A DNA stretch of 64,000 bases from Zygnema circumcarinatum SAG 698-1b. Taxonomy: Eukaryota; Plantae; Zygnematophyceae. The number at the start of each line of letters is the position of its first letter. Position 1 is the first letter of the stretch. The notes under the pieces are model-generated. The model saw nothing but the letters and a program-made list of their open reading frames with translations. It did not search any database and was not told the DNA's origin. The position numbers and the translations under genes were made by a program. The DNA is taken from positions 4,131,909 to 4,195,908 of the forward strand of contig CM074804.1 in NCBI GenBank assembly GCA_037447605.1, read 5' to 3'. This document shows positions 19,650 through 50,967 of this stretch, in pieces.

Positions 19650-19815
19650 CTGCTTCTAGAGCCTCGTTGTTGGGCACAGAAGCAGATTCCAGCTCATAGC
19701 CATTTCCTTTTTTGTTCCAAGTCCTTTTCGGCCGGTTCCTCGTGGTTCCCCACATTGTTTTGTGCATATACATTTGATGCTATCGCCATCGCGAGATCAA
19801 CACCGACACTTCGTT
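19650..19815 (+). mobile_element. CRE-like retrotransposon 3' end relic, copy B
   Basis: CTGCTTCTAG (the element's CF* stop)...GGTTCCTCGTGGTTCCCC...CATTTGATGCTATCGCCATCGCGAGATCAA aligns by eye with the 3'UTR of copies A and D. Lies in the TBL2 upstream region. Confidence 0.65.
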
Positions 19816-20422: not shown

Positions 20423-23400
20423 TTAAGCTCGTTTCGTCTTGTCCATGATCTCAATGTGTCCTTTGGGAATGGCATATTGCTGCACAAGGTGTCGCCCCAA
20501 ATCCTCCAGCACTCCTCCCTGCACAAGTACTTCACTCTGCCCTTTCTTTCCTGCATGAAGGAAAAAGGAAACAGAAAGAAGTGTTAATCAGATATAGGTA
20601 TTGGAATGGAGGCTTTAAAGGAAGGATGTGGCATTGATCTCACGATGGCGATGCCATCAAATGTACATGGACAAAATCGTCATGGGGAACCACAAGGAAC
20701 TGGTCGCAAGGCAACAAAGGACATAAGGAAAAAGCGTGTTTGTTTAGGCGTTGAGATTCTGCCAATGTTCCAATACCTTTGCCTCTGTTGTTTCACATAT
20801 TCCGCCATGGAGTTTAGAAAGTGCTTACAAGCTCAAACACTCCGTATTTCCTCATTTGCCTGCCAGCTTTGCATAGTCCGTCAGCTGGATACTAATGGCT
20901 TATTCTGAGGCATCGAAAGGAAACCAACAACCTTACCTGGCACTTCCGCTAGTGATGTGCTGCATGCAAACTTCTTCTGCAGCTCCGCTGCCAGCGCTTC
21001 AGGGTCCACCAGGAACGATTCCACCCCAGTGACACGTGTCACCTTCTTGTTTCCCTGCCGCCGTTCCGTAATGATGTGCACGCTTTGCAGTGCTCCTTTC
21101 CGGACGACTGACTGACTGCCACGTGTCACTCTATGGTGAGCTTGCATTCTTCCGACAAAAGTAGGACCTAAGTCCTTCTTGTGTACCTCGTCAGGATAGC
21201 GTGTGCCCTTTTTAATAGCGCCTTTGAAAAGCGCATCACACAGGGTTGCATCCAAGACGACCATAGCCCGATTTTCTGTCTTGTCCAAGTTCAGCAGTTC
21301 CACATATCTGAAAGCAACCTCGGAAGCTTCTGCTGCTGAGTAATAACCCCCAGTGTCAGCACCGACAGCCTCAAAAATAGGGCTAACTTGATGTGTAACC
21401 TTGAAGACCTCAACTACCTCAACACATGCTTCCCCTTGGCTTGGTATTGGCGTGACCCCTTTGGCTGCTGGTGAAGCTGTAGGAACATCTGCAGACGGAG
21501 GGCTTTTCTCCGGAACAAATTTCAAGTATTCAGGATGTCTTCTGTTGATGCCGGTTATAAACATCTCTTTTCTGTGTTTATCCTCCTTCACGGTAACCTA
21601 ATACAGATCACATGTCAAGCAGGCAGTAAGAAAAATCTGTCCACTCCATTGAGCATTGTAGAGATAAGCTGAAAAGGCGTTGTGGATCAATCCTGTGTGG
21701 CCACAATTGAACAGTCAACTCGTATTCGGGTGTCCGAAGTACAAGCTCAAATGAAAGCGATACTAAATTGTCTGCAGAGTTTCAAAAACAGGAGAATGAG
21801 CGAGGAAAAATCGAGTGTTGGAGCTCACCAGACCCGAAGACGCTGTTGTTTGCAGCCACTTGCTGAGTTTTTTATGAGACGACTTCTTCATGTCTAGCGT
21901 GGTCCCAGGAGGCCGCTTTGGCAATATGTGGTTGGACCTGTGGAAAATTGGAGCAAAGAGATGGTGATGGTCAAGGAGGAAAAATGGGGTGTGGAAAGAG
22001 GGGTAGATTAGACGTACAAGGATAAATGGGAAGGCGATTGAATCTGACGCACAGAAATTCATTCATACAAACTCATTATTCGTATGGTTGACTTCCATTT
22101 TCAAGGCAGGCAACACGTGCTTCTCATTCCAAACCAACGTGGAGAGATCGCCTACCAAAGTGTACTGCCTGGAAGTGGCAGTTCTTTGTCCTTAACAGAC
22201 GCATGAAGAGCCTGCAGCAGACACTTATCCAACAGAGCATCCATGTCTTCCATTGTCAACGCATTCGATGCTGCATCTTCTTCTCCCTCACCATCCCCTG
22301 CCTCATTTAAATGGAGCTCTCGCATACCGTCGGTAACTGCACCTCCGTCTCCTCGTGCATCACCACTGGGCTGTGCCCCGTCTGTTGCAGTTGCTGCATT
22401 ATTTCCTCCTCTGGAAAATGAATCCTCCTCCTCTTGCTGCCCTTCCAAATCATGTGCCTCTCCTGCTGTCCCTTCGTGCATTTCCCTACTTGTTCCTTCA
22501 GCTAAGTCAGAAATATCAGTCGATGCACTTCCTTTAGCTGGATCCTCCACAACCACCCCATCCAAAAAACCAGCATTTGGCACATATTTTCCTTCCGCTG
22601 ACTCCCTGGCAAGCACATGCAAACAGAGTCATATGCTTAAGACTGTCAGGCTGTAACTATGAGAGCATCTTCTCAATATTGTCTGATAGACCTGTCCAAT
22701 TTGTTGCGTGAGGCATTCACTGGGGAGGGGGGGCACACAATGCAGGATCCCGAAACCAGAGCATGAGCCAAGAACGCAAGCCGGCCACTTGTGAAGGACC
22801 AAGCACTTTGGGGTCTGTCCATCTTCGGCCAGCTGCTTACCCAAAAAAATGTGCATGCAAGAAAGCGCCGCCTTTCTAGACTAAAGCCGAAGTTAACTTG
22901 CCATTGTGATGTTTCAAATGGTTAACCTCGCTTTTAACCCTTGGGATACATCAAGTCATCTTGCACTTGCAGTTCAGTTCAGGAAGGCCTGTTGACAACT
23001 TACCACAAGGTATCTTGATAGTAGTGCATCACACGAACAGCCTTCCCCTTCAGTCCAGCTCGCAGAGCCTGCTGGCTGCTGGTAGCGGTGCTGCCAATCT
23101 GCACCGATTGTTGCAGCATTGAGGGACGTGAGGCTCAAAGTAAGGAAATGACGACCTCTGCATGTAAGCAGTTGAAATTTATAATAGATGCTCTACGGTG
23201 CACGAATCAATGCCACCTTCTGAAAAATGGCAATGATTCGAAAAAGATAAAAACTCTGCTTCACAGGCATAGGACTTGGCTTAGTCGGCTGCACTCAACT
23301 TTGATTCAATCGCAAATTAATCGTGATTGCTCCATGTCAGCACCAAAAAGGCATTATCCTGCTCAATCATAGTTTTCTTCCTAGACCTTCGGCCACACAA

Positions 23401-29861: not shown

Positions 29862-30312
29862 AGCAAAGGATGTGGCATTGATCTCACGATGGCGATGCCA
29901 TCAAAACGTACATGGACAAAATCAGCATCAGGAACCACGAGGAACTGGTCGCAAAGGACTTCAAGGACAAAAGAAAGAGCTAGGAGCGGAAAGCTACGCC
30001 TAAGCGCAACAACGCAGCCCTCCCTCGAAGCAGCCGCGAAGGCTACATCGCGCGGAGGGAGGGAGGGAGCGACGCACTGCCACCAACCGCGGCTTCACGC
30101 CGAAGGGGCGGAGAAGCGAGGCACCGTTGACTGGCAATGGAAATGCGCTGTCGATAAAAAGTAGCGAGGATTGATCGGCTTCCTTCCGGGGCCGTGCGCG
30201 CATCTCCAAGGAGCGATGAGCGCACTGGCGGAGGAAGGACGGACGGCATCCAAACGGGCGTCGAGGCGCCCACAAATCGCAACAGCCGCAGGAGCAAACT
30301 CGTCGACCGAGT
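29862..30312 (-). mobile_element. 5'-truncated CRE-like RLE non-LTR retrotransposon relic, copy D
   Basis: The minus strand reads DEFAPAAVAICGRLDARLD/FLRQCAHRSLEM/SILATFYRQRISIASQRCLAS...RGCF, frameshifted and homologous to copy A, with the same 3'UTR. Confidence 0.8.
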
Positions 30313-30685: not shown

Positions 30686-33600
30686 TGTAGCGTAGTGGAG
30701 CTGCGCTCGACGGATCCGCGTCAGTTCAGTTGTACTTGACATATGCCTCTTCAGTGTCACGGACCGGCATAATCCAGGAGCTGCCGACGGAGAATGCGAG
30801 AAGGCGGCGCCATGTGTTGGCGGCCCACGGAACAGCACACCATCCAGCAAGGCGCACTCGGAAGCGCCGCATAATGCCGCCGATTGTCATTTGTTGACCT
30901 ATCAGAAGGCTCCACGTAGTCAGTCAGGCCTCTCAGTGGGCAGTTGGCCAATCAGAGACTGTCATTGCTAAGACTTAGGATTTACTGTCAGTGATAAGTA
31001 GATGGGATGTCAGTGATGCTAGTTTGTCTTTTAGTGCTGGGCTTAGTATTTGTATTTGCTGTGTGGTTTGTTGTCTTGTTCTTCTTTTCTTCCTCTCAAG
31101 CTCTAGCAACAGATGCTAAGTAAGAGAGAGAGAGAGAGTTCCATTGCGTAGAGAGAGAGAGAGAGAGAGAGTCTTCTTGCTGATAGCATTTAGACATCCC
31201 ATTCAGCCCAGCCAGACAAGCATTTCAGTGAGAAGACACTTTTATTGCAATGACAATCCCCAGCCAACCGCTGGCTGGGGTGAGTTTCCAAAACACAACC
31301 TTTATCTAAGCTGAGTCCTATTTTCCCTTTGCTGNNNNNNNNNNTAGAGGATTCACTGGAAAGCAGGAAGATGCAGAAGCCTGGCTGAGACATCTGGAGG
31401 AAAAGGCAGCGCAAGCAGACCTGAAGGATGACCAGTGGATCAAGCTGGCCCTTGGGGCGCTGGAAGGAGAGGCAGTCAATTGGAAACTGTCCCGAAACTG
31501 GCACAAGGCGGCTGTCGTTGGCACCCTGACTAGGGACACATTCAAGCAGGCTTTCAGACAACGCTGGATTTCAGATCCAATCACTGTGCTAGACCGACTT
31601 CGCTACATAGAGTGCTACAGTGATGAGCGGTTGTTNNNNNNNNNNGAGCCGACAGCGGCACAGCCGGAGCCGACAGCGCCAGTGACGGAAGAAATGCACG
31701 TGAACCCTCCCCATCGCCCTCGGGCAGCCCGTTTCTACCCCCAAGCAGCCGATCGTCGACCACCTCCCCCGACAGATGGCCTATCCCTGATTGAACGCAT
31801 GGTTCATCAGCTCATGGGGGACAAGGCTAAGATCGGAATTACCTTGTCACAGTTGATGCAGCTGGTTCCAGGTGCTGCAGCCGTCGTTCGTAAGCTGGCC
31901 GACAGCGCAGAGGCCACCCTGCGGCCTCCCACGGTTCCCACCTGGGACGCCCTCGCACACCTCCTCTCCGAGATATATACTACAGACTGCCACGTGCTTC
32001 TTCCAGACCGCGACCTCGCTCTCCCGCGGGCCCCTCGAGCACCTTTATGTCCCTCTACCCAACACTCACGTGCGACGATCGTCAATGCATGGCTGAATGG
32101 CCACCCAGGGAGGTCATGATCGACACAGGAGTTATGCGACAGTCTGTCCAAACCAATGACTGAAGGCTACAGGGGTTAAGTTGGACAAGACGCTCGAACC
32201 CATCCCCAGATATGTGGGGGTTGAGGGGAGTCTACATGAAGGTTTGGGCAGTGCCCAGGTGATCATCAGCCTTGGAGAGATGGGAGCCACGGTGAATGCG
32301 GTCATCACAGCCGCTGAGCATTATTCTATCCTGCTTGGCTCAGATTGGCTCATTGCAATGGGGGCACAGATCGACTTTTCTACGTGTCAGCTGCACTTAT
32401 CTGCTGGCGGGACAGCTTGCTCCTTCCCCATCATCCTTGAGTCCCTTGCCATCGCCTTCTGAAACGACACGCCACGCGTAGTCTCTCTGACCCGAGATGA
32501 ACATGTACTGGCATGCCGGTCGGCAGCCCCATTCTTCTATGGATCTGCCAACTCTGATACTGGAGACGGCACTTCCTCCTGTGGCTCTCTCCGGGGTTGA
32601 GCCTTTCCTGGGTGCCAATGGGAGAACTTTTGCTGCGCAGGTGCTGGCAGCCGAGCTTTCCCGCCCACCAGACTAGCGATGAAGAAAGCGGCTAAAATAG
32701 ATGGAACATATGCCACTGGGGTCGAGCATTGAGACCCAATCAAGACATCGCAATTGCGACAAGTGCTGCGTTGCTATCACTGACAGTCTTTGCCTTGCCA
32801 TGCATTGACATTTGGGGGTACTGATATTGATATGAGAGATCCCTTGCACTGATGACCATGACCTTATCGCTTTTCCGCTGCTCTACAGGGGGGCCATGTC
32901 CAAGACAGACCCGATGAAGAAGTGTGCTGCTGACCCAGGAAGCCCTGGAGAACACCCTGCGGGCCAGCCTGTGCCTCCGCCACCAAGCCGGATGGTAGAC
33001 CTCGTTTGGAGACTATTGGAGTTTGATGGGGACTGATGAAGTGGGATCCTGATACACGTTGGATGTGGACCCTGCATCCTCCACGGCGCTCCCCTTGATG
33101 ACCCAGTGGTTCCCAGGCAATTGCAGATGCAGAAGTCCTCCCGGAGACGCCTTTTGCGAGAGGCCGATCGCGCATGACAGGGCCTCGACGCTACACGCTT
33201 CATGCAGTGAGATGCTTCCTTTGGGCTCAAGAATTCTAGGCCAAGTCACCAGCGCCTGGGCCAACCAGGTCTTTGGTCCTGCCCGTCTCTCTGGTTGCAC
33301 TGTGATGATGCTTGCCTCCATAGCAAGGATTGGTCCTCCCACCTGCAACACATTGACCAAGTACTGCAACAGCTCATCAGTGCGCGTTTGAAGATTGCCC
33401 CCAAGAAATGCAAGTGGGGCCATCAGGAGATCACTCACCTAGGACATCGTCTTGGCATCAATGGACTGAAGCCATCACTCGACAAAATTGAGGCCATTGA
33501 CCTCATGCCAGTTCCACAGAACCTCACTCAGCTCAAATCTTTCTTGGGACTCACCTCCTTCTATCGCCGGTTCATCAAAGGTTNNNNNNNNNNGCAGGCA

Positions 33601-33715
33601 GACCCACAGCACCAACACAACCCTTCATCAGTTTCAGCACGGACGCGCGAGTGGCCGTACAGCACCTGCAACCAGCTCAGCAGTCTCCCCTTAACCCCAC
33701 TTATCTTGTGCTACA
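30686..33715 (+). mobile_element. Degenerate Ty3/gypsy LTR retrotransposon (three assembly gaps inside)
   Basis: Termini TGTAGC (30686) and GCTACA (33715) are flanked by a CTGT direct repeat. Gag-like segment at ~31380-31630, protease C-terminus ILLGSDWL at ~32330, and RT/RNase H linker CDDACLHSKDWSSHLQHIDQVLQQL...KKCKW...LGH...LKSFLGLTSFYRRFIKG at 33295-33583. Stops and frameshifts are present. Confidence 0.85.
31335..33593. other. Three 10-N assembly gaps (31335-31344, 31636-31645, 33584-33593)
   Basis: Runs of n in the sequence. All fall inside the LTR element, so its true length is unknown. Confidence 0.99.
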
Positions 33716-34739
33716 CTGTTCTAAAACTCTGAAGCTTTTGAGTACTAGAACGTTCTAATAATGCTGAAATCTACAACTCTGAAAGTCGCTTGTCCATCCG
33801 TACCCGGCCGAGCCGAGCCGCGGGCGCCGCCCGCCGAGAGCCTGCCTCGCTCCGCCTCAGGTGGCGCCGGTAATTCCGGTACCGTACGGCGCGCTTCGGA
33901 CAGGGAGGGGGCGTACGGACGGTACCGCAACGAACGATGTCAGGAACGTCAGTTCACGGCGGGGCGCGTTGGCCTGCACGCACTCTGGAAGAAAGTAAAG
34001 TGGTGCTGAAGGGTTTTTACACAGAGAACCGGTACCATTTTGTAGGCGGATCTCGATATTGCAAAGTACTCGGTTTGGTATTGCGGAACTACCGTGTTCT
34101 AAAACAGAACAGGTTGAGAAAAAAAGAAACTACAGACTTTGGCTTCTCAAAAATAAACTTTCAAAACCAGTTTCTCAAAAGCAAACCCTATATTTGTGAA
34201 CACGAGTCATTCTGAGAAATATGAGAGATGGATTCCTAAATTTTTTTCTCAACACAATTTTTATGGAGAACCAATTGAACATTGAACAATTAATTATTGT
34301 TCGTCTTCAATTTGAGTTTCCCTTGGGTCGTTCGATCAACAATGAGATTTTAGCGATCGCAAAGCGCGTGGACCCGCTCGTCCATACCCGTACTACTGAA
34401 GAAAACCTTCAGTAAGGCTGATACCCAGGCTGATTAGGGGGAGTACTGCACTCAGGTAAAAAACGATCCTCCCCCCAAAGTGTACGGTACCGCAAAATAA
34501 AAACTCTTCAGCACTACCTGGGCGTGCCAGACTTAAAAAACGTTAGTATGCGTGCTCGTATGTTTGAAACCAGAACGAGTACTCGAGTAATATCGCGATC
34601 CTTTAGCGGCGGAGTACTTCCGTAATCCTTGTTTTCGTAACGCTTTCCGTAAGATTTCGTTATGTCTGACACGCCCTCCTGACGACAAAACCGCACCGGT
34701 GGCTTTTTGCACGTCTGGCACGCCCTCATGAGCAACCTT

Positions 34740-35110
34740 TCGGTCGTACGAACGGCCGGACGGACGGACGGACTGACGGGCGGGGGGAACCTGCGGCGGC
34801 GCGTGCCAACCGTACAGCAGCCCCAAGCCTCCGCGAATCCGCTGACGCCACGTGTCCCACCTTTTCGAACGGCGGCACGCCGTACATTTCCGACCGTTGG
34901 ACCCCGCGACGTGCGTCAGGTCAGACGGCGCCAAGCACTCGCCAAAGTCGGACCGTACTGGACCGTACTGGACTGTACCGTACCGTACCGTACCTTTACC
35001 CATACGACGGCAGCGGCCGAGGCGAGGGAGCCCGGCCCGGCGAGGGCGCCCGGCCCCGGCACGCGGCCGCCGTCGTACGAGGCCGTACAGTAACGGCCCT
35101 CGGCCTGTTA
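34740..35110 (+). promoter_or_regulatory. Dense CCGTAC/GTAC array (SBP/SPL-type motif) upstream of transporter copy 1
   Basis: About 8 CCGTAC plus CGTACG in 370 bp, including GGACCGTACTGGACCGTACTGGACTGTACCGTACCGTACCGTACC. A CT-rich leader follows. Confidence 0.5.
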
Positions 35111-35393
35111 CAGTCCAGTATCGCGATGCGAATTCTGGCCTGAACGTCCGCTCCCTCCCTCCCACTCCCACCCTCCCTCCCTCCCACTCCCACCCTCCCT
35201 CCCTCCCTCCTGCACAGAGCAAGCAGCAGCACCTCGCCCGCGCCGCTCCCCTCCGCGCGCGGTGCCTTTCCGCCTCCGCGACAACTATCTCAATCACTTC
35301 TGCTCTCTCTCCGATTCCTCACTCACCTGTCTTCTTCCGGTCTTCTTCGCTCCCTTTACCTCTTGTTCCCTCGCTCGGCCCACTCTCCTAACC

Positions 35394-37941
35394 ATGTCGT
35401 CTGCTCCAAAGGTAGATACAACGGCTACATCTCCCGAAGAGGTAAACTACCACCCTTTCATCTTCCACCATCTTACTCTCCAGAGAGTCTTTCCAAAATA
35501 TCCAGTTCAATAAACTCGTTTTGTCACTCACGAATTTCTCTTCTATAACCTAGTCTTCTTTGTTTTCATTCCTATCATATTCCTTTTCATTGTTATCGTG
35601 CAGGCCGAGGAGCCTTTATTGTCGCACAAGACGCCTGGAAAATCTCCATCTGAAAAGGATCGACAAGGAGAGACTGTGTTTGAGGACTTGAAGATTAGAT
35701 TTCTCGCAATTTTCAGAGAATATGTTCCAAACTTCAAGGCATTCGCGTCCGTGTTTATGGCCGCTGCCGTGATGCTGACAGTGTTTCAGTGGTGGTTCTT
35801 CAATATCGCAGTCATCATTATCAACAAATGGATTTTTCAGGTGATTTGACGTCACTTGTTCATTTACTGGGTTTGGCATTTCCTTCCTTGACTTGATTTC
35901 ACTTCTTGTTCAAATAAGTGTCTCCATTTTTTTTGTAATGCGAATGTACTCCTCCTTCGACACTACCCTACTTCTTTCCTCCCCTTATTTTCTGTCTGGA
36001 AATTTTGAATTTGAGGAAGAACTTTTCCAAACAATCGGAGGAATTGCCGGCAACGAAAAAAAAAACAGGTTGATGACAACGAATAAATGCACAAAACCCA
36101 GCGTCGCCACATTGGTCACCATGAGTTTTTCGTGCTTTCGAAGTTCAAATTGACGTTTTCCGAGTTCCACCGCGCTCAGCTCAGGATTCATTTGGTTCAA
36201 TTCGGATTCACTATTGCTCATTAACGCATCACCCTAATGGTTTGCTGGATGAAGCTTCAAACCCCTTCGCGAAACCATGAATGCTACTTGTGAGGACCTA
36301 TCTTTTCCCAATACACTACCTGGAAAATTCAGCTGAATTTACATCTTGCCGTGACGGCTGGTGCAGGAATTCCATTTCACGTTTCCATTGACGTTAACGT
36401 GCGTCCACTTCGCGGTGTCGTGGGCGGGGGCCCACATCTCCATACATGTGAGCAGCCCCCTCCCCTCTCCGTTTCCCCTCCCCCTCGAACCCTAATCCTT
36501 GAGAAGTGGGGGCGCATGCAAGAACCACTCGGAGCTGACCCCCCCCTTGGGCGGGCAGGGCCTGAAGCTGAGCCCCCTGATCGCGGTGGAGCGCGCGGAC
36601 CTCCTCCCGCGCATCCTCCCGCTCGCCGCCGTCACGTGCGTCAACATCGTGCTGGGCAACGTCAGCCTGCGCTACATCCCCGTCTCCTTCGTGCAGACCA
36701 TCAAGGCGCTCACGCCCGCCACCACGGGTGGGTAAATAATCTTAAGATAGCGGGAGGAAGGATAGAGCCGTCAGTAGATGAACTCAAATACAGGAAGGAA
36801 AAGATAGAGCAGTGAATAGATGGAGATAACCCATGCTACAATGAAGGGAAAAATACAGGTGAGGATGCAGCTGAAAGGGGTTTGCGTGTTGCGGGCTGCG
36901 CAGTGCTCCTGCAGGTCCTGTTCTGGGGCAAGAAGTTCCACTCGTTGGTGTACGTGAGCCTGCTGCCGGTGGTGGGCGGCATGGTGCTCGCCTCCTTCAC
37001 GGAGCTGAGCTTCGTGCTGGCGGGGTTTCTGGCCGCCATAGCCTCGTGCTTCATCACCTCCACGGGCGTCATCCTCGCGGAGATCCTCCTGAGCGGAAAG
37101 TACAAGTTCGACTCCCTCAACACGGTCAGCCGCGCCCCTCCCCTCCCCCACTCCTCCAACTCGATCACGGTCTCACACTTCTGCGTCTCCCTCTCTCCCC
37201 CTCTCCCTCCCTCCCTCCCTCCCTCCCCTCGCTGAAGGGAGCGCGGTACGGTGCGGGCGGCGGGGCGGGCAGGTGTACTACATGGTGCCGTACGGCCTGC
37301 AGCTGCTGGTGGTGCCCGCGGTCGCCCTCGAGGGCCGCGCGGTGCGCGAGTGGGCGCTGCGCTCCGGGGAGCTCTTCTGGCCCGCGCTGGCGGCCGTCGT
37401 GGCCTCCGGCGCGCTCGCCTTCGGGCTCAACTTCTCGCTCTACGCCGTCATCAAGGTCACCAGCGCCGTCACCTTCAACGTCGTCGGGAACTTCAAGGTC
37501 AGGCGGACGACTGCTGCCTTCCTCCCGCACGGGCTCCTTCTGAAAGTGAACACCCAGATAGATGGCTTCGCCTCCTCCTCGGATATTGTCGAAATTGGGT
37601 CTGCCTTTGCAGGACGCGGGGAGACTAAAGAAAGGTTTTCAGATGTCAAAAGACTAAAAAAAAAAGAACAAAGCTTGAGAGAGATCCAATGTGCTGATTT
37701 CCTGGAGGGAGTGAGTGCGTGCGGGTGTGAGCAGGTGGCTGTGGCGGTGCTCTGCTCGTGGCTGGTGTTCCGCAATCCCATGAACCTCCTCAACATATTG
37801 GGCTGCGCCATCACCGTTGGGGGGTGCACGTATTACGGGTATCTGCAGCACCACTTCGCGCAGCAGGCGAAGGCGGCCTCCTCCGCGGCGCAGGCACAGG
37901 CCGGCCCGGCAGCGCCCGGGAAGCAGCCGCTCGCTGTCTGA
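35394..37941 (+). CDS. Nucleotide-sugar transporter, TPT/NST family (UDP-galactose transporter 1 / GONST5-like), copy 1
   Basis: Motifs LTVFQWWFFNIAVIIINKWIFQ, FTFPLTLTCVHF, NIVLGNVSLRYIPVSFVQTIKALTPATT, FTELSF, YKFDSLNTVYYM, FGLNFSLYAVIKVTSAVTFNVVGNFKVAVAVLCSWLVFRNP. Seven GT-AG exons. Confidence 0.9.
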
Positions 37942-40900
37942 GCCGCACTCTGAGTCTCGGGGGAAGGGGGTGTATAGCTGGAGGGTTCGCCTTCCCTCTC
38001 AAATCTCGCCAATTCTCCATAGGAATCATAAAGGGGAAGAGTTTACGGTGTTCGGATGGTGCAAATCGCTCATTTGAGCATCTTTTTTTCCACCCGCAGT
38101 TGTACTCGTTTGAGTAAGAGATGGCGCAGTAGTTCGCGCCGAGGTTCATTCAAATTTCGACTTGTACATTACAGAGCGAAGGCAGCGCTAGAATAGGAAG
38201 GTTGTGGCAATTTGTTGCCACCAAAAAAAAAAACTTTTAGTTTAGCATTTTATTTCTATTCAATAATCAATTTTTATGAGAGAGGGGGCGAGAGCTGCCC
38301 CTAAACTGACACATATACAAGCGTAGTCTTCAGTCCTCCAGCAGCGCATGATGTTATTTTTCCACTGGTGACTGAAAATGGCATGGACAAGCATGTAACA
38401 TTGCGAGCACTTCTTCTGAAAGAGACTGAAGACTTCAGCAAGGCTGGGCTAGTCTCTACTTATTAAAAAGCGTGTCGTAGTTTCGAAGACAACGAACTCT
38501 CCTCATGCAGTCAATAACCCCTTTACATAAATTTTTGCACATCACAAAAGTACTTCAGAATCCTTTCATTCCCTTCCTACTTTCTGCCTCTCGATGTATC
38601 CATGTGAAGGAGCTTCAGACTATGAAATAAGCTAAATGGAATCTGCTTTGAAGGAAGTACAGCGAATTTCGCTGTAATGACTTGTTTCGCAAGAAATATG
38701 TACCCGGTTTGACTTGCGAGAGAGTGAAACTTTTTTAAAATACAAAATGCCCTGTTGTAATCGTGAAGAATGCATATATTGCCTAAGCTGGGTCACTCAC
38801 GGTCCGACTTCATTCAACCGGCTGAATCTCTGGAGTTGCGAACTGAGACGGAGAGTTTCCAACCTAAGAAACGAGATTATCAACTTGTTCTACTTTAAAC
38901 AGACGTGGGAAGGAAGTAGGGAAGTGGGAAGTAGCGTCAGCAAAGTTGAACCACTTCAGCTAAAGTTAACGAAGTTGAAAGGAACTGGACATGCATGCAA
39001 CAGGTCACATTGGAGCTTGGTTTGACCCGTTACACGTCGGAGCCTCATGGCTTTCATGTGTTTTTTTAGTTCGTTTTTCTTTGCTAGTTCCTGCTGTCCA
39101 TTGCCCTGGACCTTATCCCTGGCTACAAAAACCATACTTCGTAAGAAAAACGACGCAAACAATAACAGGTGTCTCTTCTAAGGAGCCGGTTCATGAAAAC
39201 ACAATGACGCAATAATAGGCTACATTTTTGCGGGGACCTTTATCTCTTCAACTCGCGTACAAAGTGTTTGTATTTAATATGAGAATGCTGGTCTATAAAG
39301 AAGTTAATCCAACTAAAGACCTGCTGCAAAAGGCATCGGGCACATCTCATTTGCGCATGCGTTTGTGTCCATATCAATTTTCAACTCCAGAGGACAACAA
39401 AGCGTCGAGCGGTCGCCGGACGACTGGAAACTGTTTTCGCATATCTACACCACGCCAAGCGGTTTGACAGTTTAAGGCCAATTCTTATTCCCATCAAAAC
39501 TGATTGATGAATACAAACTAAGTGCTAGAGAAAATAAAATAAATATTCGGCAACAAATCTCCACGATGCCAGTACCCTACCACTGCTTTTTGAACTCCGT
39601 ACGAAGTGAACAAACGCTGACGATCTAGCGTTTTTTTTTTTTTGGTGGCAACAAATTGCCACAACCTTCCTATTCTAGCGCTGCCTTCGCTCTGTAATGT
39701 ACAAGTCGAAATTTGAATGAACCTCGGCGCGAACTACTGCGCCATCTCTTACTCAAACGAGTACAACTGCGGGTGGAAAAAAAGATGCTCAAATGAGCGA
39801 TTTGCACCATCCGAACACCGTAAACTCTTCCCCTTTATGATTCCTATGGAGAATTGGCGAGATTTGAGAGGGAAGGCGAACCCTCCAGCTATACACCCCC
39901 CCCCCCCGAGACTCAGAGTGCGGCTCAGACAGCGAGCGGCTGCTTCCCGGGCGCTGCCGGGCCGGCCTGTGCCTGCGCCGCGGAGGAGGCCGCCTTCGCC
40001 TGCTGCGCGAAGTGGTGCTGCAGATACCCGTAATACGTGCACCCCCAACGGTGATGGCGCAGCCCAATATGTTGAGGAGGTTCATGGGATTGCGGAACAC
40101 CAGCCACGAGCAGAGCACCGCCACAGCCACCTGCTCACACCCGCACGCACTCACTCCCTCCAGGAAATCAGCACATTGGATCTCTCTCAAGCTTTGTTCT
40201 TTTTTTTTTAGTCTTTTGACATCTGAAAACCTTTCTTTAGTCTCCCCGCGTCCTGCAAAGGCAGACCCAATTTCGACAATATCCGAGGAGGAGGCGAAGC
40301 CATCTATCTGGGTGTTCACTTTCAGAAGGAGCCCGTGCGGGAGGAAGGCAGCAGTCGTCCGCCTGACCTTGAAGTTCCCGACGACGTTGAAGGTGACGGC
40401 GCTGGTGACCTTGATGACGGCGTAGAGCGAGAAGTTGAGCCCGAAGGCGAGCGCGCCGGAGGCCACGACGGCCGCCAGCGCGGGCCAGAAGAGCTCCCCG
40501 GAGCGCAGCGCCCACTCGCGCACCGCGCGGCCCTCGAGGGCGACCGCGGGCACCACCAGCAGCTGCAGGCCGTACGGCACCATGTAGTACACCTGCCCGC
40601 CCCGCCGCCCGCACCGTACCGCGCTCCCTTCAGCGAGGGGAGGGAGGGAGGGAGGGAGGGAGAGGGGGAGAGAGGGAGACGCAGAAGTGTGAGACCGTGA
40701 TCGAGTTGGAGGAGTGGGGGAGGGGAGGGGCGCGGCTGACCGTGTTGAGGGAGTCGAACTTGTACTTTCCGCTCAGGAGGATCTCCGCGAGGATGACGCC
40801 CGTGGAGGTGATGAAGCACGAGGCTATGGCGGCCAGAAACCCCGCCAGCACGAAGCTCAGCTCCGTGAAGGAGGCGAGCACCATGCCGCCCACCACCGGC

Positions 40901-41511
40901 AGCAGGCTCACGTACACCAACGAGTGGAACTTCTTGCCCCAGAACAGGACCTGCAGGAGCACTGCGCAGCCCGCAACACGCAAACCCCTTTCAGCTGCAT
41001 CCTCACCTGTATTTTTCCCTTCATTGTAGCATGGGTTATCTCCATCTATTCACTGCTCTATCTTTTCCTTCCTGTATTTGAGTTCATCTACTGACGGCTC
41101 TATCCTTCCTCCCGCTATCTTAAGATTATTTACCCACCCGTGGTGGCGGGCGTGAGCGCCTTGATGGTCTGCACGAAGGAGACGGGGATGTAGCGCAGGC
41201 TGACGTTGCCCAGCACGATGTTGACGCACGTGACGGCGGCGAGCGGGAGGATGCGCGGGAGGAGGTCCGCGCGCTCCACCGCGATCAGGGGGCTCAGCTT
41301 CAGGCCCTGCCCGCCCAAGGGGGGGGTCAGCTCCGAGTGGTTCTTGCATGCGCCCCCACTTCTCAAGGATTAGGGTTCGAGGGGGAGGGGAAACGGAGAG
41401 GGGAGGGGGCTGCTCACATGTATGGAGATGTGGGCCCCCGCCCACGACACCGCGAAGTGGACGCACGTTAACGTCAATGGAAACGTGAAATGGAATTCCT
41501 GCACCAGCCGT
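36354..41511. repeat. Large inverted repeat (palindrome): arms 36354-38234 and 39630-41511, unique spacer ~1.4 kb
   Basis: The arms are reverse complements across exons 3-7, introns and 3'UTR. Differences seen are only G6 vs G5 (37819-37824 / 40042-40046), GGGGGAAGGGGG vs G12, and A11 vs A13. Confidence 0.95.
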
Positions 41512-42592
41512 TACAGCATATTGATTCAGTAAGCTATTGCCTTTGAATTATATTTATAATATTCTCAAAGAGATTGGGGGTGTAAAGTAACCAAATAATG
41601 TGTGAAATAACCAAATAATGACAAGATTCAGCAATACAGAGAGTATAATAATTTGATTTGAACCAAACGAAACCTGATAAAATTTAAAGAATGCAGATGA
41701 GCGGAGGAACAGGAAGAGATATGCGAGCAAAGAAATAGATGATGTGGCATTGATTTCACGATGGCGATGCCATTAAATGTACAGGGATAAAATCATCACG
41801 GGGAACCACGAGGAACTGGTCGCAAAGTCTTAATGGACAAAAGAAAATAGCTATGAGCGAAAAGTTACGTCTAGGCTACGCCTAGGCGGGGGAGCAAAGC
41901 CTTTACTTTCCATGCTATCACTCCCTCTTCTCATTCAGATTATCAAATCTTTCCAACGATCTCAACATTCTCCAATCAAAATGACCAAAAAAGACGAGGA
42001 AAAGAAAATTGTGCAGAACAAGAAAAAGGCAAACCTCCTCCAATGGGAGTGAAGTCTAATGAAGGCACCTGGAAGATCCACTTGTTGATTATGATAACTG
42101 CAATATTGAAGAACCACCACTGGAAGACTGTGAGAGTCACAGCAGCTGCGGATAAAACTGTCGCAACCGCGCTGAAGCTGGGAATGAAATTCTTCAAACT
42201 CCAAGAAGGGCGAAAAGTTTGTGGCCTCTCCTCTGCTGCGTTTGGAAAAAGTTCGACTCCTTCTTTTGAGAACAAAGGTTCCTTCTCCTGTACACGGCGA
42301 AATATCTGTTTTAACCTGTTAGCTTCAATAAAAAATAAAATGCGATTTTCCAGGAATAGCGAATGGGTTAAAGCATTCTATAAACTGGATAAAGTTACTG
42401 TGACATGTGTAACTTGATAAAGTTACTGTGACATGTTAACTGCCAAACGAGTAAAATCACCGCTTTAAGTGAAAACCAAAAAGTAGGCGCAAGTGATGGA
42501 GAGTTAGAAACGGAAGGTGGGACAGAGAGAGGGAGAGTGAATGAGCTTACAGCCATATGCCCTGCAGTCTCTGATGCGGAGTAGGGAGGCAT
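39925..42592 (-). CDS. Nucleotide-sugar transporter (UDP-Gal transporter/GONST5-like), copy 2, with an apparent 1-bp frameshift in the last exon
   Basis: Has its own diverged exon 1 (MPPYSASETAGHMA) and exon 2 (EKEPLFSK...LTVFQWWFFNIAVIIINKWIFQ), then exons matching copy 1. C5 at 40042-40046 instead of 6 shifts the last exon; this is either a real lesion or a homopolymer error. Confidence 0.82.
41735..41886 (-). mobile_element. CRE-like retrotransposon 3' end relic, copy E (in intron 2 of transporter copy 2)
   Basis: GATGTGGCATTGATTTCACGATGGCGATGCCATTAAATGTAC...GGGAACCACGAGGAACTGGTCGCAAAG matches copies A, C and D. Confidence 0.75.
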
Positions 42593-45079: not shown

Positions 45080-47669
45080 TTAGTCAAGTTGCATTGTCTG
45101 CAGAGCTCCACCCCCACAAACAATTAGCAATACTCGGGACTTTGTAAATCCAAGTTCTTGAACTTCAGATGATACAGCACAATCATATACCACTTTAAAA
45201 TGAAGTGTTTGCCAGGACTAAGCAGGATAGCCACACTCTGAAGAAATAGCATACAAGCTATGTAATTGTCTATAATTTACTGAACAAATAATCAAACCAG
45301 TCCTGTAAGGCTTAGGCGCAGTAAACAGTTTGGAATCTCAAAAGCTTCAAACGTTTACGTAGGAAGGGCGAGCTGAGATAAGGCAATTTGTCCAAATGGA
45401 CTAAACTCACCTTCCAGAGGCCATCATTCAGGTAATGCAGAGTATCCACACCAATCCCCTTGTTCACTCGCTTTCTGCAGCGCCAAATCCAGGAACTCAA
45501 AATGTAAATGCTGCCATGCAAACATTTACTTTTCTTCACCTCGTGAGAGGCACAAACATCGCACTCTCACTAGGACGCTGTCTGTCCACTAGAAATGTTA
45601 TTTTCAATGCGATAACCCCTTCATTGATGGAATCAGAAGATTGCTGAAATGTAAGAGTCTTACCCTAAGTGAACTAACGATATAAAAATATCTCGAGAAA
45701 GAGCTAACATCACCCTACCTCGAGAGAAGAAAGGCCAACTTTATTCCGACTATGCAGGTTAAGCGGTGGGAACACGAGAAATTGAAGAAGAGTGCTCATA
45801 CATTTCAGATGTGGGCATTTTGGTCATGCCAATTGCCAGCGCATTTTCCTTATCCTCTGCCATTACCGCCTGCAGACACCCGCAGTTTTCCTCTTGATCT
45901 CAATTTGATTTCCTGCATAATGACGACAAGAAGCACAGCAACCAGACAGACTACACCAATTTTCAAACATACGATCACTTCAGACATCCCATAGTGATTA
46001 TGAAACTCTTTTCCTTTCGTCAACTACCCTGAAACCGAAAGACATCACTATTGGGACACGCTGATCAGTGAAAGAGAGACGTCGCATATTCTCTGCCTTC
46101 AACGTTTCATTCGCCTTACAATACCGGACCTTTATACCAAATGACAGAAGCCCTAATAGGGAACTCCTTTCACATATCTGAGCATCAAAGTGTGCATTCC
46201 AGCCCAATGCCATTATTCCTTCAACGTTTTTTGGAGACGATTCACGACTCACCACTGGTGCATCTGCAGGGACATCAGCATCCAAACCTCCTCCTTTTGA
46301 TGTGAGGCCGGGGCACATGATGTTTGCGCCTGCCATCACAAACTTGATGGCGCCACGATCCACTTTCACCTTCTTCATCATATCCGGATCTACGCAGATT
46401 GGCCACAACTCATATCTTAAGTCAAATATGCTCCTTATCTACTTCAAAGATTTTTCAAGACGTTAAAGCCCATCAAAGAATGCTTGAATAGTCTACGTTC
46501 TAAGTCACATTCAGCGGCACTCAAACCAGCGAGGCCCCTCTTCCCACTTTCCCTTCCATTACGACTTTTGCTCCCATTACCAAAACTTACATTGGTGAAG
46601 CAATCTTAATGTTGGCATGTAAGGGCCATCACGAATGTTGAAAAAGAGTGGTACATTGTTTACGACAACGAGGTTGATATGATTCTGACTGCCCCATTGA
46701 ACCCAAGCTTCAGTTTCACCCACACATTTGCTTCTCGCTATTTTAGCACAAATGGCGCTTACACTTCTGAGCCAAAAAAGGAAATGATTTTTCTTATCAT
46801 TTCTATCATTAAAATAAACTCATGCTATGTCTTTTTGCGAATTTTTCACTGTCACTCATTCACCAATACATCAATTTCTTTCTAATCTAAGTGCTCCACT
46901 TCCACTTTGATTTTCTTAGTGAAAGTGAAACCTCCTTGGTTCCCGTCCTTTCAACATTATTTCAATAACTTATTTTGCTTCAACGCATATGCGGAAGCAC
47001 AACGGCTAATCAAGGCATTACAGAAACCCAGTGATTTTGAACTATGGCACGTTGGCTGTTCTTTAACAGAGCTTACCATTTGGCAACTATCAACGGAGAT
47101 TTCTTGGGCAAAAGGTCATCCAAAATTGGTTCAAGTAGTGGGTACTGCTCCAACAACCCGCACGAAAACAACTTTCAGAACTGAATAGAGCGGACTCATT
47201 GAGCTTTCAAGAACATTCTGGGCTCCAGCAGCCCTGCAAACTCCTTCATGTGGTTCCTTTGATTCACATGTATGCTGCAATCTACTAAGGAAAGACGAGG
47301 TTTCATGATTCAACCATTTTTACCTCCTCTGCTATGCTTTGACGGATTTTTCGCTGCACGGATGCTTTCACTTGATTTTGTCCAGCCACCTCCTCTGTGG
47401 TAAACCTGAACGAAGAAACATGCAAGACGCCTCACTTTATTCTTTCTGGTGCACGTGCGGAATATGCTAAAAAAGTGTAAGCTGGTTAAGAATAGGCATT
47501 ACTGCTTCTTTACACATAACATTTGTCTAAGAAGTCACTAAGACCATTGTTTTCATAGCATGACTGCTGAACTGATAGTTACGAGATTCACAACAATAGC
47601 TTCTCGAAGGTAGTCTCATAGACAATCAAAAGAAACATTGACAGCGGAAATATCTTACTTCTTGAACAT
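45080..47669 (-). CDS. MCTS1: MCTS1/MCT-1 (Tma20) PUA-domain translation reinitiation/recycling factor (multi-exon)
   Basis: Starts ATG TTC AAG AA|GT (MFKK). Later exons include [89 protein letters not shown], and the last exon TMQLD*. Confidence 0.92.
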
Positions 47670-47736
47670 GGTTGATTAGAGAACGGATTGCTCGCCAGGA
47701 AGAGCTTTCACGCAACGCACAAAGGAGATATTGAGC

Positions 47737-49762
<2,026 letters not shown>

Positions 49763-50967
49763 ATGCAGCTGAATCTATATTATGTTATAAATCATCCCTC
49801 CCACTGCGAGTCCTCGGCTTTGGCTGTGCCCCCGCAACTGCCAAGATCTCGTCTCCCCAGATTTGGTCAGAACCGCAAGTGCACAATTTTTACAATTTGT
49901 CAAGAAAGAGAAAAAAGGGTTCTCTGCTTGAATGCGACTGGTTCAAATATCGCACAACCAGTATGCAATAATTGTACGTTAGCGGGAGAGAGAAAGTGAG
50001 GGATTAGATAAGGAGTGTGAAAGAGAGGAAACGCTAAGAAAGAGAAAAAAAGAGGCCTTGTTCCTTCGTGACGCGATGCAGGCATGCAATATCGGCAATT
50101 CGCCGGCCCTGTTCTGCAATGTCTTCCAGCTCAATTGCGAGCCTGCATGTATGTACTGTATTTGTGAGCAGCTTCTGCAAGCTGCAATTTCAAAAATCGT
50201 AATGTGCCAACGGCTGTCGAGGGCTGTTTCCTCGCCCTCCCTCTCAGAGGGTTGAGCGCAGCGCCACCCTCGTGTCGCCACAATGTTTTCCACCTGCCCG
50301 GAATAAAAACCGCGCGCGCCCATTGGCGAACGCTAAGTTTCAAGTGGCTCGCAAAAGTTTCCGACCTGCCCTGCCCTTCCTGCCGAGGGCCCCTCCCACA
50401 ACGGTGTAGCGTATTGGCGAGGGGAAGGCAAAATATCGTACCCACCGATATTCCTGATTTCCAAAAACTATTTGCGCATTTTACCGGCCGGCCGGCAAGC
50501 GGCCGACCCTCGGCGCCGCCGCGTCGCAGCGACGTTTCCCGGCCGGCGGGCGGACCCCCCCTGTATCGGCATCCGGCCGGCGGTATGGCTGAATACCGAG
50601 CCCGCGTCCCTTTTCGGCTCGCTCGCCGCTGGGCAGCGAAACGAAAAATGTCGCGTCGTCGACCGGGCAGAGGGAAGAAACTTTTTCGACCCTTTTTTTT
50701 TTTTTTATTGGGAGGGGAAGTTCCTGCCCGGACAGGCGCAACCATGGCTCTTGGAAGGCTTGAACAGGGCTCCTCCTCCCAGTAGCGCTTTCGCTCTAGC
50801 TCTGGCTCCCTCCCTCTCTGCGTCTCTCCCGCTCCCACCCCTCACCCGGCTCTATCACTTTACTCTCTCATCGCTAGGAAATCACTCCATAACCGCTTAC
50901 TGCTGTTTCTTCGATTTTTCTTTGTTTGCATCTGCACTCTTGAGGAAAGAAGAAGGGATCTGAAGAT

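Follow-up and report, generated by a model that had tools for sequence, protein, structure and literature searches.

How can the two halves of a single gene pair differ enormously in apparent age? This question is raised by two neighboring genes in a 64,000-nucleotide (nt) stretch of the Zygnema circumcarinatum SAG 698-1b genome (contig CM074804.1; hereafter the window, with positions counted from its first letter), which are predicted to encode nucleotide-sugar transporters and which lie tail to tail. The 3' halves of the two copies form a near-perfect palindrome, whereas their 5' halves have diverged to saturation. The explanation that we favor, to which we assign a probability of roughly 70%, is that of an old inverted duplication in which the 3' 1.9 kb were kept alike by intrachromosomal gene conversion between the arms, a conversion that was probably recurrent and GC-biased. 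The two genes are convergent and have seven exons each:

35394-37941, forward strand: copy 1 transporter gene, 395 amino acids, open frame, GT-AG introns
35394-35441, 35604-35840, 36367-36447, 36559-36727, 36904-37124, 37273-37497 and 37735-37941, forward strand: coding exons 1 to 7 of copy 1
39789-42592, reverse strand: copy 2 transporter gene, seven-exon model, GT-AG introns
42592-42551, 42287-42069, 41498-41418, 41306-41138, 40961-40741, 40592-40368 and 40130-39789, reverse strand: coding exons 1 to 7 of copy 2

For both copies, exon 1 is predicted only. From exon 2 on, the splice sites are supported, because a local alignment of the copy 1 model to P0001, a protein from a Logan transcript assembly, is gapless at every exon junction (307 columns). 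Introns 1 and 2 occupy the same aligned positions in both copies and are in phase 0, in keeping with the conserved intron positions claimed by an earlier reading of these letters made without database searches (the sequence-only reading).

That reading had also described the 3' halves as a near-perfect palindrome with sharp boundaries, and both statements held. Global alignment, together with BLAST of 34-44.5 kb against the whole window, revealed a 1,887-nt inverted repeat with 99.7% identity. In the region 33-45 kb, a seed-and-extend scan returned two abutting inverted-repeat pairs (36347-37823 with 40042-41518, and 37820-38233 with 39633-40046), which combine into one arm pair interrupted by a lone 1-nt indel. 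The outcome is two inverted arms of more than 99% identity that flank a unique spacer:

36347-38233, forward strand: palindrome arm 1, comprising the last 20 nt of intron 2, exons 3-7, introns 3-6 and a 292-nt 3' untranslated region (3'UTR) up to an A-run; 99.7% identical to arm 2
39633-41518, reverse strand: palindrome arm 2, the reverse complement of arm 1
38234-39632, no strand: unique spacer between both 3' ends, 1,399 nt, GC 0.42, with only short open reading frames (ORFs)

The two halves of the spacer showed no mutual similarity and BLAST found no further copy of it in the window; an Rfam scan of 34-44 kb, spacer included, gave no match. At the outer boundary, the copies become identical some 20 nt upstream of the exon 3 acceptor, with two transitions at the extreme edge of the arm (36350 C/T and 36353 G/A), and upstream of it the copies have in common just a short CTGAAT motif, possibly the branch region. 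The inner boundary falls at the A-run downstream of the 3'UTR, which has 11 A in copy 1 and 13 A in copy 2. The copies had been called essentially identical within the arms, introns included. This stands insofar as introns 3-6 are identical and the 301 shared codons and these introns contain zero substitutions, but the description overlooked, besides the difference in A-run length, the following:

37819-37824, forward strand: coding G-run, 6 G in copy 1 against 5 (5 C on the forward strand) at 40042-40046 in copy 2, a 1-nt indel
37964-37965, forward strand: 3'UTR difference within a G-run, AA in copy 1 and GG in copy 2 (39901-39902)

All differences in the arm interior lie in homopolymer runs, and the sole others are the two transitions at the outer edge.

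Outside the arms, the picture is reversed. The features that bear on it are:

35604-35840, forward strand: exon 2 of copy 1, encoding a diverged N-terminal tail and the first membrane helix
42069-42287, reverse strand: exon 2 of copy 2, the paralogue of copy 1 exon 2
41741-41876, no strand: dispersed repeat fragment in copy 2 intron 2, 75-86% identical to 20625-20735, 29869-30005 and 19692-19800

Comparison of exon 2 between the copies revealed 51% amino-acid identity over 73 aligned codons, and nucleotide identity reached 77% over one 138-nt stretch only. Synonymous sites are saturated: the proportion of synonymous differences (pS) is 0.75 across the aligned codons, and the last 45 codons, where 19 of 27 synonymous sites differ, give 0.70. 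Nonsynonymous divergence (dN) is 0.025 over the last 25 codons; these encode the first membrane helix, which is held by strong purifying selection. Introns 1 and 2 and the promoters or 5' flanks could not be aligned between the copies. One block, with its introns, is thus near-identical while the rest of the same genes has diverged, and with a saturated 5' part next to a 3' part free of substitutions, one half of the pair looks enormously older than the other. The divergence of exons 1-2, introns 1-2 and promoters proposed from the letters alone is therefore borne out, as is the contrast that a separate synonymous comparison of exon 2 and the arms was expected to give. A retroelement relic had been placed in intron 2 of copy 2 only; a dispersed repeat, at most a putative retroelement relic, does lie there and is absent from intron 2 of copy 1.

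The same boundary separates two base compositions. GC content at third codon positions (GC3) in exons 1 to 7 of copy 1 is 0.38, 0.54, 0.74, 1.00, 0.96, 1.00 and 0.86, respectively. Exons 1-2 taken together have a GC3 of 0.52 in copy 1 and of 0.52 in copy 2; pooled over both copies the count is 94 of 182 third positions (0.52), compared to 281 of 301 (0.93) in the arms (Fisher p = 3e-26). Non-coding sequence shows the difference as well (GC 0.544 in the arms vs. 0.405 in introns 1-2 and the spacer; p = 1e-13), so that both GC3 and intron GC are raised in the near-identical block. When the whole 64 kb were scanned, 60-codon windows with periodic GC of at least 0.85 occurred inside the two arms only; other long coding-like ORFs in the window, picked by eye and not confirmed, have a GC3 of 0.43-0.64. 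Along the arm, exon 3 at the outer edge has the lowest GC3 (0.74), exons 4-6 approach 1.0 and exon 7 comes to 0.86, a profile that is expected if conversion tracts most often cover the middle of the arm. Raised GC through GC-biased conversion is documented for palindrome arms (PMC8981503), and raised GC3 and intron GC for the converted parts of mosaic paralogue pairs (PMC2720389).

What the two genes encode was addressed with profile and database searches, in which exons were submitted singly; the alignment of the joined copy 1 model to P0001 was made by script only. By these comparisons the genes belong to the TPT family (Pfam PF03151) and resemble nucleotide-sugar transporters of the UDP-galactose-transporter-1 type. 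Exon 5 alone scored 52.8 bits against the Pfam TPT profile, above the curated cut-off of 30, and exons 4 (27.8) and 7 (18.5) were each below the cut-off alone; the profile positions matched by exons 4, 5 and 7 are colinear (63-103, 108-179 and 259-290, respectively). The copy 1 model is 68% identical to P0001, which carries PF03151, in colinear fashion over the 307 columns. A word search with a 267-amino-acid ORF of copy 2 (exon 6, intron 6 and exon 7) returned TPT-family proteins, P0001 being the best and one being named 'UDP-galactose transporter 1'; relatives in this search were at most 65% identical, and there was no product of Zygnema circumcarinatum for this gene among them. The closest relative found is a transcript with 65-68% protein identity. 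Exon 5 also matches the Galdieria translocator 5Y78 (E = 5e-6), and the nearest solved relative by sequence is 5Y78/5Y79. Copy 1 has the conserved C-terminal motif, and a simple hydropathy scan gave seven strongly hydrophobic regions; TPT-family transporters have ten membrane helices. Unlike the family at large, the copies have cytosolic N-terminal tails of about 50-60 residues before the first helix, which are copy-specific and had no match in the searches made; exon 2 of copy 1 as a query gave no match either, in a search that covers proteins of 43-138 amino acids only and is uninformative on full-length relatives. The closest relative (L001; Logan ERR12684110, contig 25723, 22-1110) is a 362-amino-acid transcript-encoded protein that is 68% identical and has a short and unrelated N-terminus.

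The sequence of events that we propose would begin with an old inverted duplication that gave two convergent TPT-family nucleotide-sugar transporter paralogues. The neighboring arms would pair within one chromosome, and non-reciprocal homologous repair would copy one arm onto the other, keeping exons 3-7, introns 3-6 and the 3'UTR near-identical. Conversion would halt about 20 nt before exon 3, where the second introns of the copies have no shared homology; the heterology in intron 2, with a repeat in copy 2 alone, would stop a tract from spreading upstream, and the two edge mismatches at 36350 and 36353 fit erosion of the boundary. Promoter, exon 1, intron 1, exon 2 and most of intron 2 would have diverged freely, with selection retaining the first membrane helix, and both copies would be expressed. 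Over many rounds of conversion, mismatch repair towards G/C would have brought the third positions of the arms to 93% GC, and the last conversion would be very recent. An old duplication with a 3' part kept alike by conversion had already been suggested from the letters alone, and the saturated pS of exon 2, the lack of substitutions in 301 codons and four introns, and the GC footprint all speak for it.

Several observations weigh against this explanation. Third-position GC in the arms (0.93) is far above that of the arm introns and 3'UTR (0.46-0.72), and intron 4 and the 3'UTR are barely enriched; because biased conversion alone would lift all sites, a further factor may contribute. The orthologue transcript L001 has a GC3 of 0.8-1.0 over its whole length, N-terminus included, and high GC3 may therefore be ancestral rather than accumulated in the arms. 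The homopolymer differences in the arm interior may be assembly errors, in which case they carry little information on the time since the last conversion. A GC3-rich third paralogue elsewhere in the genome could have served as donor, although none lies within the window. Finally, the evidence comes from one assembly of one species, which makes concerted evolution across species a conjecture. Whether the arms were driven up in GC or shielded from a genome-wide AT drift, they are in either case under a substitution regime distinct from that of the adjoining exons of the same genes, which is what GC-biased conversion predicts.

Near-perfect identity by itself needs no recurrence, as a single very recent event would suffice: one conversion or one replication template switch could have overwritten the 3' 1.9 kb of one old paralogue with sequence from the other, the high GC3 being pre-existing and due to an unrelated cause. 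Both boundaries abut non-homologous sequence, as a template switch would leave them, the A-run at the inner boundary could supply microhomology, and L001, GC3-rich throughout, illustrates that high GC3 can be ancestral. Such an event leaves unexplained, however, why a GC3 step from 0.52 to 0.93 within one gene coincides with the arm boundary in both copies. Moreover, its partners would have been as diverged as the 5' halves are today, with about 77% identity in their exons and introns that cannot be aligned, and partners of this kind are a poor substrate for homologous repair; a non-homologous replacement that is in register and restores a complete reading frame is improbable. It is from the coincident GC step and from the poor substrate that diverged partners would offer to a first conversion today that we infer recurrence, and we consider a single event unlikely. 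An assembly artefact, with one arm owed to a mis-join, to duplication of the consensus or to a fold-back chimeric read, or with arm differences erased by polishing, would agree with the unfinished state of the sequence (three 10-N gaps within 4 kb upstream), with the restriction of arm-interior differences to homopolymer runs, which is typical of consensus errors, and with the lack of any independent sequence of this species for this gene in the protein searches. Yet the two arms are joined in frame to different exons 1-2, diverged and with introns of their own, which a fold-back chimera cannot yield, any more than it can produce a 1.4-kb unique spacer; polishing cannot turn saturated introns identical, and there is no N in 35-43 kb. 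We give this account very little weight. A mis-join of haplotypes was rejected on the ground that the 5' halves are saturated and not allelic.

In plants, inverted gene duplicates are known as sources of small interfering RNAs (siRNAs) and of proto-microRNAs, and the geometry here, with convergent genes and a 1.4-kb loop between arms of 99.7% complementarity, would permit read-through of the spacer to give a 1.9-kb double-stranded RNA from which siRNAs silence both copies. It is highly improbable that the locus serves mainly as such a source: ordinary mRNAs of both copies are of the same sense and would not pair with each other, and purifying selection on exon 2 (dN 0.025) together with an intact copy 1 points to protein function. 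CpG depletion was considered as a sign of silencing and dismissed, as the observed/expected ratio in the arms (0.89) is not below that of the window (0.79), which gives no sign of long-term decay through methylation, although this evidence is weak. A more elaborate version would have a long-lived, selected mini-palindrome with its boundary pinned at the intron 2 acceptor, a shared transport core with specializing N-termini and promoters, and occasional read-through hairpin siRNAs feeding back on both copies, i.e., a young autoregulatory locus resembling a proto-microRNA; we regard this as a long shot. Two further candidates did not fit. A foldback transposon with 1.9-kb terminal repeats was rejected on account of the flanks, which are inverted paralogous exons, and of the ends of the arms, where no target-site duplication was seen. 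RNA-mediated copying, suggested by a tract with one end near the intron 2 branch region and the other at an A-run, is contradicted by the retention of introns 3-6 and by the presence of the A-run in both arms.

Recurrent arm-to-arm conversion, by comparison, has precedents. Judged by its sequence, the locus would be a case of mosaic concerted evolution, a known kind of process that is known from other organisms. Described pairs are BMP8A/B, which is inverted, and DDX19A/B and TUBG1/2, which are direct (PMC2720389). As in those pairs, part of the gene with its introns is near-identical through what would be conversion and the remainder diverges, the converted part has elevated GC3 and intron GC, and there are two copies only. 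The present pair differs from BMP8A/B, the copies of which are 235 kb apart, in lying 1.4 kb apart and tail to tail, and from all of the pairs in its far larger GC3 contrast (0.52 vs. 0.93), in its host, a streptophyte alga, and in being known here from one species.

Palindromes of the primate X and Y sex chromosomes have arms of about 8 kb to more than 1 Mb and hold whole genes, whereas the arms described here are 1.9 kb long and end inside intron 2 of each gene. Arm-to-arm GC-biased gene conversion is described for the primate palindromes (PMC8981503, PMC8600007), with which the locus shares gene-bearing inverted arms that are more than 99% identical, a unique spacer, and arm GC above flank GC. 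The difference between arm and flank is about 4-5 points in primate palindromes (PMC8981503), compared to 14 points in non-coding sequence and 41 at third positions here. The locus would work like the primate palindromes without being classed with them. In human RHD/RHCE, the 3' ends of the genes also face each other and gene conversion is frequent (PMC4824203); both loci consist of tail-to-tail membrane-protein paralogues that exchange, or here would exchange, segments by conversion within a chromosome. RHD and RHCE exchange patches and are distinguishable along their length, whereas here one continuous block runs from exon 3 to the end.

The most consequential difference between the arms is the coding G-run. 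As assembled, copy 2 has one G fewer and is frameshifted in exon 7. The missing G falls in two glycine codons before the conserved ...CTYYGYLQ... end of the last helix, and the frame is shifted from the residue after the two glycines, which corresponds to copy 1 residue 358. As a consequence, a tail of 83 out-of-frame, basic residues replaces the conserved last 38 residues, the conserved end of the last helix is lost, and the last exon is read in the shifted frame (copy 1's stop would fall at 39925-39927). P0001, P0002, P0007 and P0009 all read the frame of copy 1 (...GGCTYYGYLQ...). Because exon 2 of copy 2 has experienced strong purifying selection, the frameshift is either a very recent lesion or a homopolymer error of the assembly consensus. 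Short-read polishing tends to fail in exact repeats. The proposal of two isoforms with an identical transport core is accordingly weakened for copy 2 as assembled, with the qualification that the frameshift is possibly such an assembly error.

Within the arms, intron 6 is open in frame, giving an ORF of 222 amino acids at 37273-37941 (267 amino acids in copy 2), and prokaryote-style gene callers would report a false unspliced protein. Introns 3 (36448-36558) and 5 (37125-37272) have the same G-rich ten bases before the AG acceptor, without a pyrimidine tract. These two introns also begin C-rich, and their GC (0.67 and 0.72) is the highest among the non-coding parts of the arm.

The locus is a compact gene pair, half homogenised and half free to diverge, and as each gene straddles the boundary, its own exons provide an internal control. 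The GC3 jump from 0.52 to 0.93-1.00 at this boundary would be unusually clean single-locus evidence of gene conversion with a GC bias in a streptophyte alga, and we found little literature on GC-biased conversion in streptophyte algal nuclear genomes. If related strains share the structure, the strength of the bias and the rate of conversion would be directly measurable. The possible frameshift in one arm would make the locus an example of a lesion that a palindrome either repairs or spreads. In annotation, a mis-called copy 2 is a risk, and short reads will mis-map at the locus. As the mechanism itself is known, the main interest lies in the clean within-gene GC3 contrast and in the possible lesion in one arm.

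In the surroundings, the dispersed repeat of copy 2 intron 2 is about 110-140 nt long and has four copies in the window, with a core that contains a short internal palindrome; a repeat scan of 18.5-35.5 kb missed it and BLAST detected it. The window contains 30 N in three 10-N gaps (31335-31344, 31636-31645 and 33584-33593), which sit in a GC-rich stretch just upstream of copy 1, and ORFs near them at 31310-32116 and 33211-33729 are possibly part of a mobile element. A short tandem repeat of the CCGTA type lies in the 5' flank of copy 1 together with a (TCCC)n tract (34950-35000 and 35150-35210), and a similar C-rich tract occurs in intron 5 of the arms. The composition profile revealed a (GA)n microsatellite of about 2 kb at 47630-49780, with a GC skew of 0.86 and an AT skew of 0.81.

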